A stretch of 64,000 nt of DNA from Vitrella brassicaformis CCMP3155 (GCA_001179505.1 CDMY01000467.1:1-64000), one strand, 5' to 3'. Positions 2,906 to 32,199 are shown, counted from the stretch's first letter. A program made the numbers and translations. The notes: generated from the sequence alone by a model not told the origin.

Positions 2906-2928
2906 TCGTATGGTAGCAATACAGTCCG

Positions 2929-3046
2929 ACCGGCGCCCAGCTGATCTCCCCCCAGCCTGCGCTTGGAGTACCCTGGCCGCTCTGTCCTTTCACAGCCGAG
3001 GTCGGAATGGAGTCGGAGTGTTTCGAACAGGCTAATGGCTGCCGGT
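2929..3046 (-). rRNA. rrf: 5S rRNA
   Basis: About 118 nt downstream of 23S with terminal helix ACCGGC/GCCGGT and 5S-like internal CCGACTCCATTCCGACCTCGG. Confidence 0.8.
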
Positions 3047-3092
3047 GAAAACCAGTTGACTAAACCTACTTAACCCTGCCATCACATTCCCG

Positions 3093-3464
3093 ATCCAAGT
3101 CCTCGATCTGTTAGTTCCTTTCGGCTGAACGCATTGCTGCGCTTACACCTCAGGACCATCTATCAGGTCGTCTACCTGTGACCTTACCCGCTTGCATGCG
3201 GTGAGAGCTCTCATCTTAGGGGGAACTTCCCACTTAGATGCTTTCAGCGGTTATTTCCTCCGCACATAGCTACCCAGCGCCTACCCCTGGCGGGATAACT
3301 GGCACACCAGAGGTGCGGCTCTTTCGATCCTCTCGTACTAGAAAGAGACCCTTCAGTGCTCTAACGCCCACACCGGATACGGACCGAACTGTCTCGCGAC
3401 GTTCTGAACCCAGCTCACGTGCCGCTTTCATGGGCGAACAGACCAACCCTTGGGACGTGCTACC

Positions 3465-3514
<50 letters not shown>

Positions 3515-3708
3515 AGGAACTCTAGGGGGAGATCAGCCTGTTATCCCTAGAGTAACTTTTATCCGTTGAGCGACGGCCCTACCACTCGGTACCGTCGGAT
3601 CACTAAGACCGACTTTCGTCCCTGCTCGACTCGTTAGTCTTGCAGTCAAGCCCCCTTGTGCCTTTGCACGCCCTAACCGGTTTCTGACCGGCCTGAGGAG
3701 ACCTTTGT

Positions 3709-3755
<47 letters not shown>

Positions 3756-4009
3756 ACCTGAGAGGGTACGAGGACTGGCTAACAGTGTCTTCGTGAGGGC
3801 GCCAATACCAGAAGGGTGGTATCTCAAGGTCGACTCCCCCCCTTCCGCAAAAGGGGCTTCCACATCTCCCACCTATCCTGCGCAGCTGGAACCAGCGCCC
3901 ACTCTCAAGCTGCAGTCAAGCTTCATAGGGTCTTTCTGTCCAGGTGCAGGTTGTCCGCATCTTCACAGACACTTTTATTTCACCGAGTCTCCCTCCGAGA
4001 CAGCGCCCA

Positions 4010-4107
<98 letters not shown>

Positions 4108-4140
4108 AAGAGAGCCGTGCCCGCAAGGGCGCACACCCCT

Positions 4141-4174
<34 letters not shown>

Positions 4175-4775
4175 CCATACGTCGTCTTTCAACTTAGCGG
4201 AGACCTGTGTTTTTGGTAAACAGTCGCTCGGGCCTGGTTATTTCAACCCTTTAGGCACCCCTTCTCCCGAAGTTACGGGGCCAATTTGCCGAGTTCCTTA
4301 GAGGGAGTTCTCTCGAGCCCCTTAGTATGCTCTACCCACCTACCTGTGTCGGTTTACGGTACGGGCACCAAACGTTTTGACTCACACAGGCTTTTCTTGC
4401 GGAGCAACCGAACATACCAGCTACACCACAGACTGGCTGTCCTAGTTGCTCCGGTCACCTGCGGTCACAGCAAGGTGGTGAAAGAATGTTGACTTTCTGC
4501 CCATCGACTACACCCTTGGTCTCGTCTTAGGCCCCGACTAACCCTACGTGGATGAGCCGTAGCGTAGGAAACCTTAGGTTTACGGGGCGCTGGATTCTCA
4601 CCAGCGTTTTCGCTACTCAAGCCGATATTCTCACTTCTGCCTTGTCCACTGTAAGGCTTTCGCCTCAGCTTCTACCTAACACAGAACGCTCCCCTACCGG
4701 TAGTTGTGTCAGTGCCCAACTTCCCCACAGCTTCGGCAGACCGCTTGAGTCCCCTACATTTTCGGCACAGGGATG

Positions 4776-4809
<34 letters not shown>

Positions 4810-5406
4810 ATGGCTGCTTCTAAGCCAACCTTCTGGCTGTCCTTGCGTCCCCACCACCTTTTACACTGAGCGATCATTTAGGGGCCTTAGCTGGTGGTCT
4901 GGGCTGTTGCCCTCTCGGCACTGGAGCTTATCCCCCAACGCCTGACTCATCCCATGCTTGAAAAGACTGGTATTCAGAGTTTGCCTCGATTTGGTACCGG
5001 CTAGGCCGGCCCGCACCGAAACAGTGCTTTACCCCCAGCTTCTTCATGGGTGGCTGTGCCTCAACACATTTCGGGGAGAACCAGCTAGCTCCGGATTCGT
5101 TTGGCATTTCACCCCTAACCACACCTCGTCCGATGATTTTGCCGCATCAACCGGTTCGGGCCTCCGCCTAATATTACTTAAGCTTCACCCTGGGCATGGT
5201 TAGATCATCCGGGTTCGGGTTCATGGTGGCTGACCAAATCGCCAGCAAGGCTCGCTTACACTCCGGCTCCGACTTTTATGCCTTAACCTTAGCCAGGCAC
5301 CATGACTCACCGGCTCATTCTTCAACAGGCACGCAGTCAGGCCACACATCACGGCCCTTCTACTCACTGTAGGCACAGGGTTTCATGTTCTTTTCACTCC
5401 CCTCTC

Positions 5407-5440
<34 letters not shown>

Positions 5441-5858
5441 GCACTATCGGTCACCCACGAGTATTTAGCCTGGCAAGGTGGTCCTCGCTGATTCAAACGG
5501 GCTTTCCCATGCTCCATCCTACTCGAGCAGTCACAAGCTCTGACCACTCTCATCACCCCCGCTTCTATGGAAGGTTTGTTGGCAGGCAACGCATTGTCTT
5601 TGTCGCCTTGGTCCCACCGTTTCGCTCGCCACTACTCAGGGGATCGTTGTTACTTTCTGTTCCTCTGGGTACTAAGATGGTTCAGTTCCCCAGGTTCGCT
5701 CTAGCCCCCTCTACAGGGGGTAGTTAAAGGGTTTCCCCATTCGGATACCTCCGTCTCACTGCCTCTAACCGGCTCTACGGAGCGTTTCGTCGGCTGGCAC
5801 GTCCTTCTTCGCCTGTGGGCGCCCAGGCCTCCACCCTGAGCCTCTAAGACCTTGGATC
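3093..5858 (-). rRNA. rrl: 23S rRNA
   Basis: Universal LSU motifs (sarcin-ricin loop AGTACGAGAGGA, peptidyl-transferase segments); terminal helix GATCCAAG/CTTGGATC defines the ends. Confidence 0.97.
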
Positions 5859-5906
5859 AAGATCAACCTCTAAAGGTTCGGGCTAAGTCTTCCGTACATC
5901 TGTGAT

Positions 5907-6855
5907 TCAATCCAACAAGTTAATTTGGACGACACTGGATAGCATTCTATACCTGCAGGAAGTCCATAAAAGCATCGCGACCCGAGCCACGGTTGCAACT
6001 GTGCCCAGATGCATCAGCATGGCACCATCTCCATCGATGCAGAACACTTGTCGGCTGGGCTGGCCAGTAGCGATGCCAAGAGCGATTGCGCTGGCGTGTC
6101 CCATTGACCCAACCGTGAGGAAGTCGCTGGAGTGGTCCTGCCCACGGCTTTCACGAAGTTCAAACAGTTCTCGAGAGGCCATACCAGTAGAACACACAAC
6201 CGCATCCTGCTTCTCCGTGTGCCGAGCGATCAAATCCAAGGCACTCTCGCGTGTCATGTTGTACGCGAACGGGTTGTCATCTACGATCGATTTCAAGGTG
6301 GGGGACTGGTATGGCTCGAAACACTGCCTTTTGATCAAGAACGCGTAGGGCGACGGACGGACCTTCATCGAGCGCAAGGCGCCATCCAGAGCGTGACGAG
6401 CACCTTCAATGGAGTTTGGCAAGACTTCAAACGGGACACCAACTTCGGTGAGAAGACTGGTCATTTTCTTGCCTTGCACAAGATGCTGCGGTTCGTCTTG
6501 CTTGCCCGGCTCTCCTCGCCACCCAATCATCAACAGCATGGGCAGCTCGTAGACTTCTGGGTCACACAAGGACAGCAGCGGATTGATGGCATTCCCAAAA
6601 CCAGAGTTCTGCATGTAAACCACTGGGATCTTGCGCGTGCCCAAGTAGTAGCCGGCCGCGATACCAATGGCAGCTCCTTCGTTTGCCGCCAACGTATGGT
6701 TGCCAGGAGCGGCGTGATCGTGCACAGAAGTCCTTCAGTAGCGAATCAGGCACTCCCGTGAAGAAGTCGAGACGACGTTCTGTCAGCATGTTGAAGTATT
6801 CCTTTGGCGAAAGGCCGCCGCGACTTGTCTGGTTCATTTTCTTTATTTCTTCCAT
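5907..6855 (-). pseudogene. ppd: Phosphonopyruvate decarboxylase (AepY/Ppd-like, ThDP-dependent) homologue, frameshifted near 6720 and C-terminally truncated, inside the 16S-23S spacer
   Basis: ORF 6562..6855 gives FFTGVPDSLLKDFCA. ORF 5907..6725 continues in another frame with AANEGAAIGIAAGYYL, VYMQNSGFGNAINPLLSL, IGWRGEPGKQDEPQH, DFLTVGSMGHASAIALG, FCIDGDGAMLMHLG. Homology stops after ATVA, and the NN end of the ThDP motif is absent. Confidence 0.85.
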
Positions 6856-6972
6856 TTTCCACAGATATTCTTTTTCAATCTAATCTACCATACGCAATGG
6901 CAGACACCTGAGGCCAGTCCAAAACAGATACAGGAGCTGGGTAAAGCTCCGCCTGCCCCACTACCTTCCAAT

Positions 6973-7007
6973 GATACATGTGATCCAGCAGCACCTTCCA
7001 GTACAGC

Positions 7008-7038
<31 letters not shown>

Positions 7039-7400
7039 CCCTTCCTTCACCTTCTCAACGAAAGCTTCGGGAAAGGCCAACTCCCGTGGCGTGACGGGCG
7101 GTGTGTACAAGGCTCGGGAACGTATTCACCGCCGTATTGCTGACCGGCGATTACTAGCGATTCCGGCTTCACGTGGGCGAGTTGCAGCCCACGATCCGAA
7201 GTGGGGCCGGGTTTAGGGAAACCTTCCCTCGCGGAAAGGCACAGGTGACGTGTTTCCTGCCAACCATTGACCCGACCATTGTAGCACGTGTGTAGCCCAG
7301 GGCATAAGGGGCATGATGACTTGACGTCATCCCCACCTTCCTCCAGCTCCGAACCGAAGTTCGGTATTTGGCAGTCTCTGCAGCCTAGCGGCTCCAGATG

Positions 7401-7433
<33 letters not shown>

Positions 7434-7526
7434 CCTCACGACACGAGCTGACGACAGCCGTGCACCACCTGTGTGTGCCCGTAGTGCGGAACCCCGTTAG
7501 GAGCGCGCAGGCACCATGTCAAGCCC

Positions 7527-7581
<55 letters not shown>

Positions 7582-8123
7582 AGCCCCCGTCAATTCCTTT
7601 GAGTTTCACCCTTGCAAGCGTACTCCTCAGGCGGGGCACTTATCGCGTTAGCTGGGATACTGCGCGTCCCACGCGCAGCATCGAGTGCCCATCGTTTACG
7701 GCTAGGACTACTGGGGTCTCTAATCCCATTCGCTCCCCTAGCTTTCGTCTCTCAGTGTCAGGCGCGGCCCAGTGGGGAGCTTTCGCCTCCGGCCTTCTCC
7801 CACGTATCTAAGCATTTCACTGCTCCTCGAGGGATTCCCCCCACCTCTACCGGCCTCCAGTCTGATAGTCTCCACATGCCCCACAGAGTTAAGCCCTGCG
7901 TTTGGACAGCAGACACACCAAACCACCTACAGACGCTTTACGCCCAATAAATCCGGATAACGCTTGCATCCCCCGTCTTACCGCGGCTGCTGGCACGGAG
8001 TTAGCCGATACTTGCTTCCCGGGCGGTCAGTCTTCCTGTGCCCGTGCAAAGAAGTTTACGACCGAAAGTGGCCTTCTTCCTTCACGCGGCGTCGCACTGT
8101 CAGGCTTGCGCCCATTGCAGAAG

Positions 8124-8172
<49 letters not shown>

Positions 8173-8476
8173 ATGTGGCCGGCCGCCCTCTCAGGCCAGC
8201 TACTGATCCTCGCCTTGGTAGGCCATTACCCGCACCAACTAGCTAATCAGCCGCAGGCCCATCCCCAGACACTCTAGCTAGCAGCTAGAACTTTCCAAAG
8301 CACTTCCTGCGCCTATAGGGGATTACCGAAGGTTTCCCTCCATTATACCCGTATCTGGGGGCAGGTGCCCACGTGTTACTCACCCGTACGCCATGGGGCC
8401 GAAGCCCCATACGACTTGCATGTGTTAGGCACGCCGACTCGCGTTCATCCTGAGCCAGGATCAAACTCGCACTAAA
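6973..8476 (-). rRNA. rrs: 16S rRNA
   Basis: GAGTTTGATCCTGGCTCAG near the 5' end, GTGCCAGCAGCCGCGG, GTCGTAACAAGG, GGATCA near the 3' end. Confidence 0.97.
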
Positions 8477-8884: not shown

Positions 8885-8957
8885 GGGGGCATAGCTCAGT
8901 TGGTAGAGCGCGGCCTTTGCAAGGCTGAGGTCAGGGGTTCGAATCCCCTTGCCTCCA
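8885..8957 (+). tRNA. trnA: tRNA-Ala(UGC)
   Basis: GGGGGCA...TGCCTCC A with G3.U70; anticodon loop TT TGC AA. Confidence 0.95.
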
Positions 8958-8966
8958 CACTTACAG

Positions 8967-9467: not shown

Positions 9468-10301
9468 ATGAAACTAGCTGTCTACGGGAAAGGGGGCATT
9501 GGGAAGTCTACGACCAGCTGCAATATCTCAGTAGCTCTGGCCCGACGAGGCAAGCGAGTGCTTCAGATTGGGTGTGACCCAAAACACGACAGCACCTTTA
9601 CCCTCACTGGATTCCTAATCCCCACTATTATAGACACACTGCAGGCCAAAGACTACCATTATGAGGATGTATGGCCAGAGGATGTCATACACCGCGGATA
9701 CGGCGGGGTAGACTGCGTGGAGGCGGGAGGACCCCCAGCGGGAGCCGGTTGCGGAGGCTATGTGGTGGGAGAAACGGTTAAACTCCTGAAGGAGCTCAAT
9801 GCTTTTGACGAGTACGACGTTATTCTGTTCGATGTGTTGGGTGATGTGGTCTGCGGGGGATTCGCTGCTCCCCTTAACTACGCAGACTATTGCCTCATTG
9901 TCACGGACAACGGGTTTGATGCTCTATTTGCGGCCAATCGTATTGTGGCCTCTGTCCGGGAAAAAGCACGTACCCACGCTCTGCGCCTGGCCGGGCTTAT
10001 AGGAAACCGGACTGCTAAACGGGACTTGATTGACAAGTACCTTGAGACTGTTCCGGTGCCCGTTTTAGAAGTCCTACCTCTCATAGAAGATATCAGAATC
10101 TCTAGGGTCAAAGGAAAAACCATCTTCGAGATCTGCGAGCAAGAGCCAGCCCTGGTTTCGGTCTGCGGCTACTACCTTAATATAGCCGACCAGCTTCTAG
10201 CCCAGCCTGAGGGGGTAGTGCCGCGCGAAGCGGCAGACCGCGACCTTTTCAGTTTACTGTCCGATTTTTACCTAGCCCCTTCCTCTGTTTCTCGTCCATA
10301 G
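9468..10301 (+). CDS. chlL: Dark-operative protochlorophyllide reductase iron protein
   Basis: [45 protein letters not shown]. Confidence 0.98.
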
Positions 10302-10324
10302 CCTGGGGCAGAGGGTGTCGATGA

Positions 10325-11656
<1,332 letters not shown>

Positions 11657-30756: not shown

Positions 30757-32199
30757 TTAGTCGATGGGCTTCATAGATAAAACTGGTTCATTCGCTCTGT
30801 CAATTCCTTTTTCAAAGCCTGCAGCCTGAGCTCGAGCTCGGCCTGCGTGCCACCAGTGTCCTACTAGTAAGAAAAATCCTAGGAAGAAGTGAGCGCAAGT
30901 TAGCCATGAGCGAGGAGAAACATAGTTTACAGAATTTATTTCTGTAGCTACGCCTCCGACAGAATTTAGCGCCCCTAAAGGAGCATGTGTCATATACTCA
31001 GCGGCACGACGTTCCTGCCAAGGTTGGATATCAGAACGGATTTTATTGATATCTAAACCATTAGGTCCTCTTAGAGGCTCGATCCATGGCGCTCGAACAT
31101 CCCAGAAGCGCATGGTTTCGCCACCAAAAATAACCTCGCCGCTCGGAGAACGCATCAAGTATTTTCCTAGACCTGTGGGACCTTGTGCAGTAGCCACATT
31201 TTCGCCTAATTTTTGGTCACGAACCAAAAACGAAAAAGCTTGAGCTTGAGAAGCTTCCGCGCCTGTAGGACCATAGAATTCACTTGGGTAAGCCGTGTTA
31301 TTGAACCACACATAAATAGACGCAGTCAGTCCCATAACAGATAGGGCGCCCAAACTGTATGATAAGTATGCTTCACCAGACCAGATAAAGGCACGACGAA
31401 CCCATGGAGCCGGGTCACTAAAATAGTGGAAGAAGCCCCCTACTATACACAAAACGCCCACGTAGATATGACCACCAATAAGGTCCTCCATATTATTGAT
31501 AGAAATAATCCACCCATCCCCTCCAAAAGGAGCTTTTAGTGTGTACGCAAAGATGGTTGCGGGATCAAGCGTCGGCGTATCTATCACACGCACATCTCCG
31601 CCTCCTGGGGCCCACGTATCGTAAACGCCATGCGTTTGCGCCCAGAAAACTAAAGACAGTGATCCTAAGCCTAACAAAACCAGGTGGTAACCAAGAATAG
31701 TAGTCATCTTATCTTTGTCACGCCAGTCGTACTCAAAGATAGGAAACTTTTTCAAGCTAGCTGGTCCAAACAGAGAGTGAAACACTCCACCATAACCAAG
31801 CACAGCCGACGATATAAGATGCACCACTCCTACCACAAAATATGGGTAAGTGTCTACAATCTCTCCACCTGGACCTACTCCTAGGCCAAGCGTAGCTAAA
31901 TGAGGTAAGAGGATAGCTCCTTGTTCGTAGAGAGGCTTTTCAGGAATGTAATGTGACACCTCGAACAAAGTCATAGCCCCGGCCCAAAAGACAATCAAGC
32001 CAGCGTGGGCCACATGAGCACCCAGAAGTCTATTAGCGTACCTCTCATCAATTAAACGAGCATTGCCAGCCCACCAAGCAAAGCCGGTGCTTTCAATGTT
32101 TAGAGTTGCTGCATAAGGTAGGTTTTTAATGTAAGGAATGCGGGGTGACTTATATAGACCAGCGCTATTTTTAAATATATCCATGGGTGCAAGAGACAT
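30757..32199 (-). CDS. psbC: Photosystem II CP43
   Basis: [47 protein letters not shown]. Confidence 0.98.

Follow-up and report, generated by a model that had tools for sequence, protein, structure and literature searches.

A phosphonopyruvate decarboxylase pseudogene in the 16S-23S spacer of the Vitrella brassicaformis plastid rRNA operon, and intact alleles of it in closely related plastid contigs

The spacer between the 16S and 23S rRNA genes in the plastid of Vitrella brassicaformis CCMP3155 raises the question of how a gene of phosphonate metabolism came to lie in an rRNA operon, and whether it encodes a working enzyme there. Phosphonopyruvate decarboxylase (Ppd) produces phosphonoacetaldehyde from phosphonopyruvate and in doing so draws the PEP mutase reaction forward. 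A first-pass annotation of the 64,000-nucleotide stretch of DNA analyzed here (CDMY01000467.1:1-64000, hereafter the window) had placed a Ppd-like sequence between rrs and rrl, in the same orientation as both, and this is borne out by a match at E = 4.6e-92 to TIGR03297, the NCBIfam equivalog model for phosphonopyruvate decarboxylase (curated cut-off, 312.5 bits). In typical plastids and cyanobacteria, the 16S-23S spacer contains trnI-GAU and trnA-UGC, and whatever occupies this position in the operon is expected to be co-transcribed with the rRNAs and cut out at rRNA maturation. The Vitrella spacer occupies the same position but differs in having protein-coding sequence instead: no tRNA gene and no tRNA remnant was found in it, and a search of the spacer against Rfam families gave zero matches even at a permissive threshold. 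Both tRNA genes are found outside the rRNA operon, trnI-GAU at 724-795 and trnA-UGC at 8885-8958, where the latter adjoins the 16S gene upstream on the opposite strand.

The first-pass annotation had taken positions 5907-6855 as a single coding region for Ppd. The similarity stands, but the intact gene does not, since the sequence carries both a frameshift and an internal deletion (Table 1). The interval is 949 nt long, which is not a multiple of 3, and it is not a single coding region. One frame (6855..6562) encodes 97 aa and is Ppd-like only in its first 43 to 45 codons, while another (6725..5910; 272 aa) holds the rest of the Ppd similarity. DNA alignment against the intact allele of plastid contig L081 shows that a loss of 8 nt shifts the frame after codon 43, and the 746 nt between the two lesions, 99% identical to the intact protein P0001, are out of frame from the ATG. 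Because the two deletions together remove 276 nt (8 + 268), the final 10 codons and the stop return to the original frame; the ancestral stop is the TAG at 5949..5947 and not at 5907.

Table 1. Features of the rRNA operon and of the ppd locus in the window, and ppd alleles among the 11 haplotypes
Feature	Position or contigs	Strand	Basis or remark
16S rRNA gene	6973..8476	-	Rfam RF00177, 1250 bits; upstream gene of operon
23S rRNA gene	3091..5857	-	Rfam RF02541, 2366 bits; downstream in operon
5S rRNA gene	2928..3046	-	Rfam RF00001, 52.9 bits; operon end
16S-23S spacer	5858-6972		1115 nt; mostly Ppd-like sequence, same orientation as rrs and rrl
Spacer leader, 16S 3' end to ppd start codon	6856..6972	-	11-haplotype alignment
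ppd pseudogene, 5' segment: ATG and codons 1-43, original frame	6727..6855	-	Corresponds to L081 cds 1-129; TIGR03297 positions 2-18
8-nt deletion junction	6722..6727	-	TGTGCTTA lost between two TGTGC direct repeats
ppd pseudogene, middle segment	5981..6726	-	Corresponds to intact cds 138-883, residues 47-294; TIGR03297 positions 21-262
268-nt deletion junction	5975..5981	-	Between two TCGCGA direct repeats
ppd pseudogene, 3' remnant	5947..5980	-	Last 10 codons, RDAFMDFLQV, then stop; compared with P0001 C-terminus
Spacer trailer, ancestral stop to 23S 5' end	5858..5946	-	Haplotype alignment
Intact ppd, 394 codons	L081, L084, L088, L089		Haplotype alignment
In-frame 18-nt ppd deletion	L082, L083		Haplotype alignment
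10-nt ppd deletion at the same TGTG site as the window's 8 nt, and 11-nt leader duplication	L090
Same 10-nt deletion, and 690-nt deletion extending beyond the stop codon	L085, L086, L087
8-nt and 268-nt ppd deletions	Window

The larger deletion takes out residues 295-384 and with them N306-N307 from the GDG...NN ThDP-Mg motif; it begins 14 residues beyond the GDG, which the window keeps. Eighteen of the 84 family-conserved positions (columns at least 95% conserved among 101 relatives) fall in the lost part, H310 among them as well as N306-N307. The N61-E62-G63 triplet (the ANEG motif, with the conserved Glu of the N-terminal pyrimidine-binding domain) is present in both the window and P0001. 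Against TIGR03297, the window copy scores 308.8 bits over positions 21-262 of 360, which is below the cut-off; model positions 263-360 are missing from it, and a separate 17-residue piece matches positions 2-18. Neither an uninterrupted frame of ~360 to 430 codons nor the full ThDP-Mg motif, GDG-X(24-27)-NN, is found in the window copy, which has a frameshift and has lost ~90 codons. Judged by its sequence, the window copy is a pseudogene with no capacity to give an active Ppd.

Could the lesions, or the insertion itself, be artefacts of assembly or cloning, for instance a chimera of plastid rDNA with nuclear or contaminant sequence? We regard this as next to inconceivable. Sequencing runs of the cultured organism were examined as contigs, and single contigs from three other, separate studies of it show 0 differences from the window over both deletion junctions. 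One of these (2035 nt) covers all of 5700-7130, and the others cover 5700-7036 and 5785-6962; the X5 contig runs into both rRNA genes, and the X6 contig runs into the 16S gene and part of the 23S gene. The same aberrant C-terminal tail is present in an MMETSP transcriptome peptide (P0121) and in a JGI protein (P0134). Furthermore, ten independent contigs have the 16S-ppd-23S arrangement; nine of them come from NCBI assemblies and the tenth from an ENA metagenome assembly. A chimera of this kind, which the first-pass annotation had named as one threat to its reading, is thus ruled out by the junction-crossing contigs together with the aberrant-tail peptides, and the same evidence rules out editing that restores the frame.

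It also appears highly improbable that the window copy still makes a working enzyme through recoding, whether by ribosomal frameshifting, RNA editing, or a protein in two pieces. The summed length of the deletions, being a multiple of 3 and returning the last codons and the stop to the original frame, would suit such a reading, as would the occurrence of the region in RNA-derived assemblies; yet the RNA-derived contigs and the MMETSP peptide carry the identical deletions, with no restoring edit, and the frame between the lesions is shifted while the original frame has stops there. Moreover, the conserved residues lost with the 268 nt would be missing from any recoded product. Programmed frameshifting and editing were therefore rejected as candidates, since the same deletions are present in RNA-derived sequences and essential residues are lost.

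A protein search recovered P0001, a 394-aa protein that is 99% identical to the window; plastid contig L081, in which the gene order is chlN-chlL-16S-ppd-23S, encodes it intact at the corresponding position. P0001 belongs to a 90%-identity cluster of 23 members, and ten contigs were compared with the window, for a total of 11 haplotypes. Outside ppd, these ten contigs are ~99 to 100% identical to the window (chlL, 99.0 to 100%), and their 16S and 23S genes are mostly about 99.9% identical to it; by these identities, the ten contigs and the window represent one species or a tight species complex. Alleles of the gene range from intact to heavily deleted (Table 1). The sequences on either side of it vary little: across the 11 haplotypes, the leader is nearly invariant, with 3 substituted columns and a single 11-nt duplication (in L090), and the trailer has two substituted columns and is identical between the window and L081 in pairwise alignment, although its first 26 nt are gone in L085 to L087 through the 690-nt deletion. 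The intact form was also seen in RNA from the environment, as a sediment metatranscriptome (X15) shows it at both sites, with 8 nt inserted at 6721 and, at 5980, a loose end continuing into the segment missing from the window.

The lesions themselves have features in common. The 18-nt deletion (cds 1089-1106; region L082/L083:5089-5106) removes six residues, VRIRAG, between TGGAG repeats, and the 11-nt duplication in the L090 leader (at -77) is in tandem, TGTATCTGTTT. Slippage at short repeats appears to be the predominant way in which the ppd locus mutates. The 8-nt and 10-nt lesions are one TG unit apart and may represent either a single ancestral knock-out followed by slippage or two events, while the large deletions clearly arose independently of one another.

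The intact alleles encode Ppd. P0001 matches TIGR03297 at 452.1 bits over positions 2-360 of 360, above the cut-off, and keeps 81 of the 84 family-conserved residues, the three exceptions being conservative (A to G, T to S, and K to R). In the intact alleles the motif is complete (G278-D279-G280 ... N306-N307). Membership in another ThDP family, a possibility that had been raised for this gene, was not supported, as models for sulfopyruvate decarboxylase, benzoylformate decarboxylase, and acetolactate synthase all scored far below their cut-offs; the intact allele reached 81 bits against a 148-bit cut-off for the ComD model and 110 against 221 bits for ComE. By sequence, the closest structures that have been solved are those of the alpha and beta subunits of a putative Ppd (PDB 9iz3/9iz4). 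This split-subunit Ppd and the ComDE sulfopyruvate decarboxylase share a ThDP fold family with Vitrella Ppd, which, unlike either, is a fused single chain. To the eukaryotic and bacterial Ppd described by TIGR03297, the likeness of the intact Vitrella allele lies in the end-to-end model match and the ThDP motif. It differs from them in that its gene is plastid encoded, lies within an rRNA operon, and has no adjacent pepM, and the plastid protein does not have the presequence-like N-terminal extension seen in eukaryotic relatives.

We asked whether variation among haplotypes bears the mark of selection on a protein. Among the 38 variable coding columns, 23 are at third codon positions (P = 5e-4), and the variants comprise 21 synonymous and 17 nonsynonymous changes, giving an omega (dN/dS) of ~0.25 (P = 2e-5 versus neutrality). 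This ratio across haplotypes indicates that the gene has been selected as a protein. Pairs inside the broken lineages gave higher ratios, 0.4 to 0.9, from very few changes. An alternative is that the intact alleles are functionless passengers, their open frame surviving only because the insertion is young, with no contribution ever made by the gene to plastid metabolism. Disruption of ppd in 5 of 11 haplotypes, the in-frame 18-nt deletion in two further ones, a cultured strain that evidently lives without the gene, and the lack of pepM in the plastid window all fit with a passenger. However, both the low omega and the excess of third-position changes run counter to the neutral expectation, and the retention of nearly all conserved residues over a stem of ~0.85 substitutions per site is hard to square with neutrality, so we consider the passenger explanation unlikely.

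With respect to the source of the gene, base composition offers a first indication. The GC3 of ppd is 0.62 to 0.64, compared with 0.454 ± 0.053 in 34 plastid frames (z = 3.1), which agrees with the earlier remark that its codons are more C/G-ending than those of neighboring plastid genes and makes it the highest of the 35 frames. Nevertheless, the flanking chlN and chlL genes are GC3 rich as well (0.61 and 0.56; 9468-11656), and for this reason composition alone is a weak argument for foreignness. Two further reading frames, at 934-2905, have GC3 values of 0.59 and 0.53, where the mean of the other plastid genes is 0.45. These values point to a regional compositional effect around the rRNA operon.

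Sequence comparisons speak more directly to the donor. The best matches overall outside the 90% cluster were at 57 to 63% identity, and those with a name were all eukaryotes, namely, Paramecium, Plasmodiophora, Mataza, Cantina, Ploeotia, and several animals. Four unlabelled matches were examined, and all lie in eukaryotic gene contexts, with neighbors such as TTI1, bZIP, and a retroelement capsid; E2F, calpain, and WD40 proteins; and a ubiquitin-conjugating enzyme. Among bacteria and archaea (one genome per species), the best matches were at 50 to 52% identity and came from Spirochaetota, Patescibacteria, and Bacteroidales. A quick tree of 103 rows placed the Vitrella gene inside eukaryotic Ppd clades with starred support of 98 and then 97. 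In a more careful tree of 60 rows, a clade of all eukaryotes and Vitrella had support of 98/94 (96/88 without the euglenid), and none of 200 bootstrap trees grouped the eukaryotes to the exclusion of Vitrella. At positions with residues that are signatures of eukaryotes versus bacteria, three of four in Vitrella are eukaryote-like and none is bacteria-like, and Vitrella Ppd shares extra N-terminal residues with eukaryotes. Based on these comparisons, the donor was probably of eukaryotic nuclear type. The first-pass annotation had suggested horizontal or nucleus-to-plastid acquisition, and clade support and identities favor the foreign origin and a placement among nucleus-type genes.

The competing account is an ordinary transfer from a bacterium to the plastid, in which long branches or sampling would have produced the eukaryote-like placement as an artefact. 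In an AU test, the best tree in which the 34 eukaryotic sequences exclude Vitrella is not rejected (p = 0.142; log-likelihood difference, 27.8), Vitrella has a long stem, and in the larger, quick tree one CPR bacterium (L025) falls within the clade as well; documented foreign plastid genes are, moreover, mostly bacterial. Such a donor still strikes us as improbable in view of the lower identity to bacteria, the supported clades of Vitrella with eukaryotes that no bootstrap tree breaks, the three-to-zero count of signature residues, and the absence from the window of any other gene from 30 bacterial phosphonate clusters. A sister pairing with Paramecium, which might have hinted at vertical alveolate ancestry, was set aside, as its support is just 33/73 and says nothing on an alveolate origin. 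A nuclear ppd of Vitrella, as a possible donor, was not found among the best 120 protein-search matches.

The search for cluster partners used tblastn with 261 reading frames from 30 bacterial ppd neighborhoods, verified PepM genes included, as queries against the window. Only the ppd region was matched, in keeping with the first-pass statement that no pepM occurs in the window, and no other phosphonate-cluster gene was found there. In bacterial relatives, a PEP mutase-nucleotidyltransferase fusion lies directly before ppd (L005:4182-5804, L009:4579-5883, and L014:4578-5873), and in L009 and L001 an iron-type alcohol dehydrogenase follows it. This is the usual layout of a bacterial phosphonate cluster, and no cluster partner came with ppd into the plastid.

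The explanation that we consider likely overall is that a foreign, eukaryote-type ppd was gained in the spacer, was kept as a protein gene, and is now decaying in a sub-lineage. An ancestor of the sampled Vitrella-type plastids would have acquired an intron-less ppd of eukaryote type, without a targeting presequence, at the site in the 16S-23S spacer where many plastids have trnI and trnA. The gene would then have remained protein coding while most of the divergence among the sampled haplotypes took place, and 394-aa alleles presumably persist intact in wild populations. In the sub-lineage that includes the window genome, it may have been knocked out by a short deletion at the TGTGC..TGTGC slippage site and then eroded by larger deletions, two of which are flanked by short direct repeats, such that the window copy would now be a transcribed pseudogene.

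How would a gene in this position be expressed? No sigma-70-like promoter sites were found in the spacer, leader included, and because the spacer has no promoter-like site of its own, ppd is most likely transcribed as part of the rRNA precursor. Its RNA would be freed by the cleavages that produce the mature 16S 3' and 23S 5' ends. The folds of the leader (z = -0.84) and of the trailer are ordinary, and no unusually stable RNA structure was found in the spacer. In bacteria and most plastids, the 16S rRNA ends in GGATCAC-CTCCTTA. The plastid 16S 3' end in the window (6973-6990, minus strand) reads GGATCAC-ATGTATC and is without the CCUCC anti-Shine-Dalgarno sequence, which would make initiation at ppd independent of anti-Shine-Dalgarno pairing. 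Going further, and more tentatively, the intact allele might be a working plastid-encoded enzyme of nuclear origin, possibly from the alga's own nucleus, whose mRNA derives from the rRNA precursor and which completes a 2-aminoethylphosphonate-type pathway together with a nucleus-encoded PEP mutase; we see this as a possibility with somewhat less than even chances.

To our knowledge, gains of foreign genes by plastid genomes are rare, and the donors that we know of are bacterial, plasmid-like, or mitochondrial. Examples include a bacterial rpl36 in cryptophytes and haptophytes, dnaX in Rhodomonas, the ebo operon in eustigmatophytes, int/dpoB in Oedogonium, and mitochondrial DNA in some angiosperm plastomes. 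Vitrella ppd resembles these in being a gene without plastid history and with atypical composition in an otherwise conserved plastid genome. It differs from them in that its best-supported donor type is eukaryotic nuclear rather than a bacterium, plasmid, or mitochondrion, in that its product is a metabolic enzyme from a pathway that plastids are not known to have, in its site within the 16S-23S spacer, and in the coexistence in nature of functional-looking and decayed alleles. We found no mention of ppd in Vitrella or in any plastid genome in the literature searched, and an earlier mention in the original plastome paper is possible. Beyond the bare insertion, what appears to be new, as far as could be found, is that the reference copy is a pseudogene, that selected intact alleles exist in nature, and that the gene groups with eukaryotic nuclear Ppd.

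A metabolic gene of eukaryotic nuclear type, maintained by purifying selection in the operon that plastids transcribe most heavily, would stand as a rare exception to the one-way flow of genes from organelle to nucleus. If the more tentative reading above is correct, the gene would have made a functional transfer from nucleus to plastid, in a direction considered to be almost non-existent, and a natural knock-out series (intact, frameshift only, and frameshift plus large deletion) would be segregating in wild Vitrella, with strains differing in their capacity to make phosphonates. The coexistence of intact, freshly frameshifted, and heavily deleted alleles amounts to a natural experiment on how a plastid gene is gained and then discarded. 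Since the reference strain has a dead allele, studying only that strain would miss the function, and the locus allows a direct test of whether phosphonates are made in the plastid of a photosynthetic apicomplexan relative.

Two minor observations concern other parts of the window and of the sequencing runs. A match to the Rfam family IsrR (the antisense RNA of isiA) lies at 31542-31725 on the plus strand (108 bits), opposite a 480-codon minus-strand reading frame at 30757-32199; it most likely reflects conserved coding sequence of CP43/IsiA type and not a genuine antisense RNA gene. In addition, a 38-nt piece of the ppd remnant (6620-6657), which occurs only once in the window, was found with one mismatch inside separate contigs from three runs of the cultured organism, including contigs of 615 and 796 nt in X5 and X6, with unrelated sequence on either side. 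The depth of these contigs relative to the plastid contig differs greatly between runs, and the piece may represent either a very small insert of plastid origin within a nuclear transcript or part of the plastid genome beyond the window.
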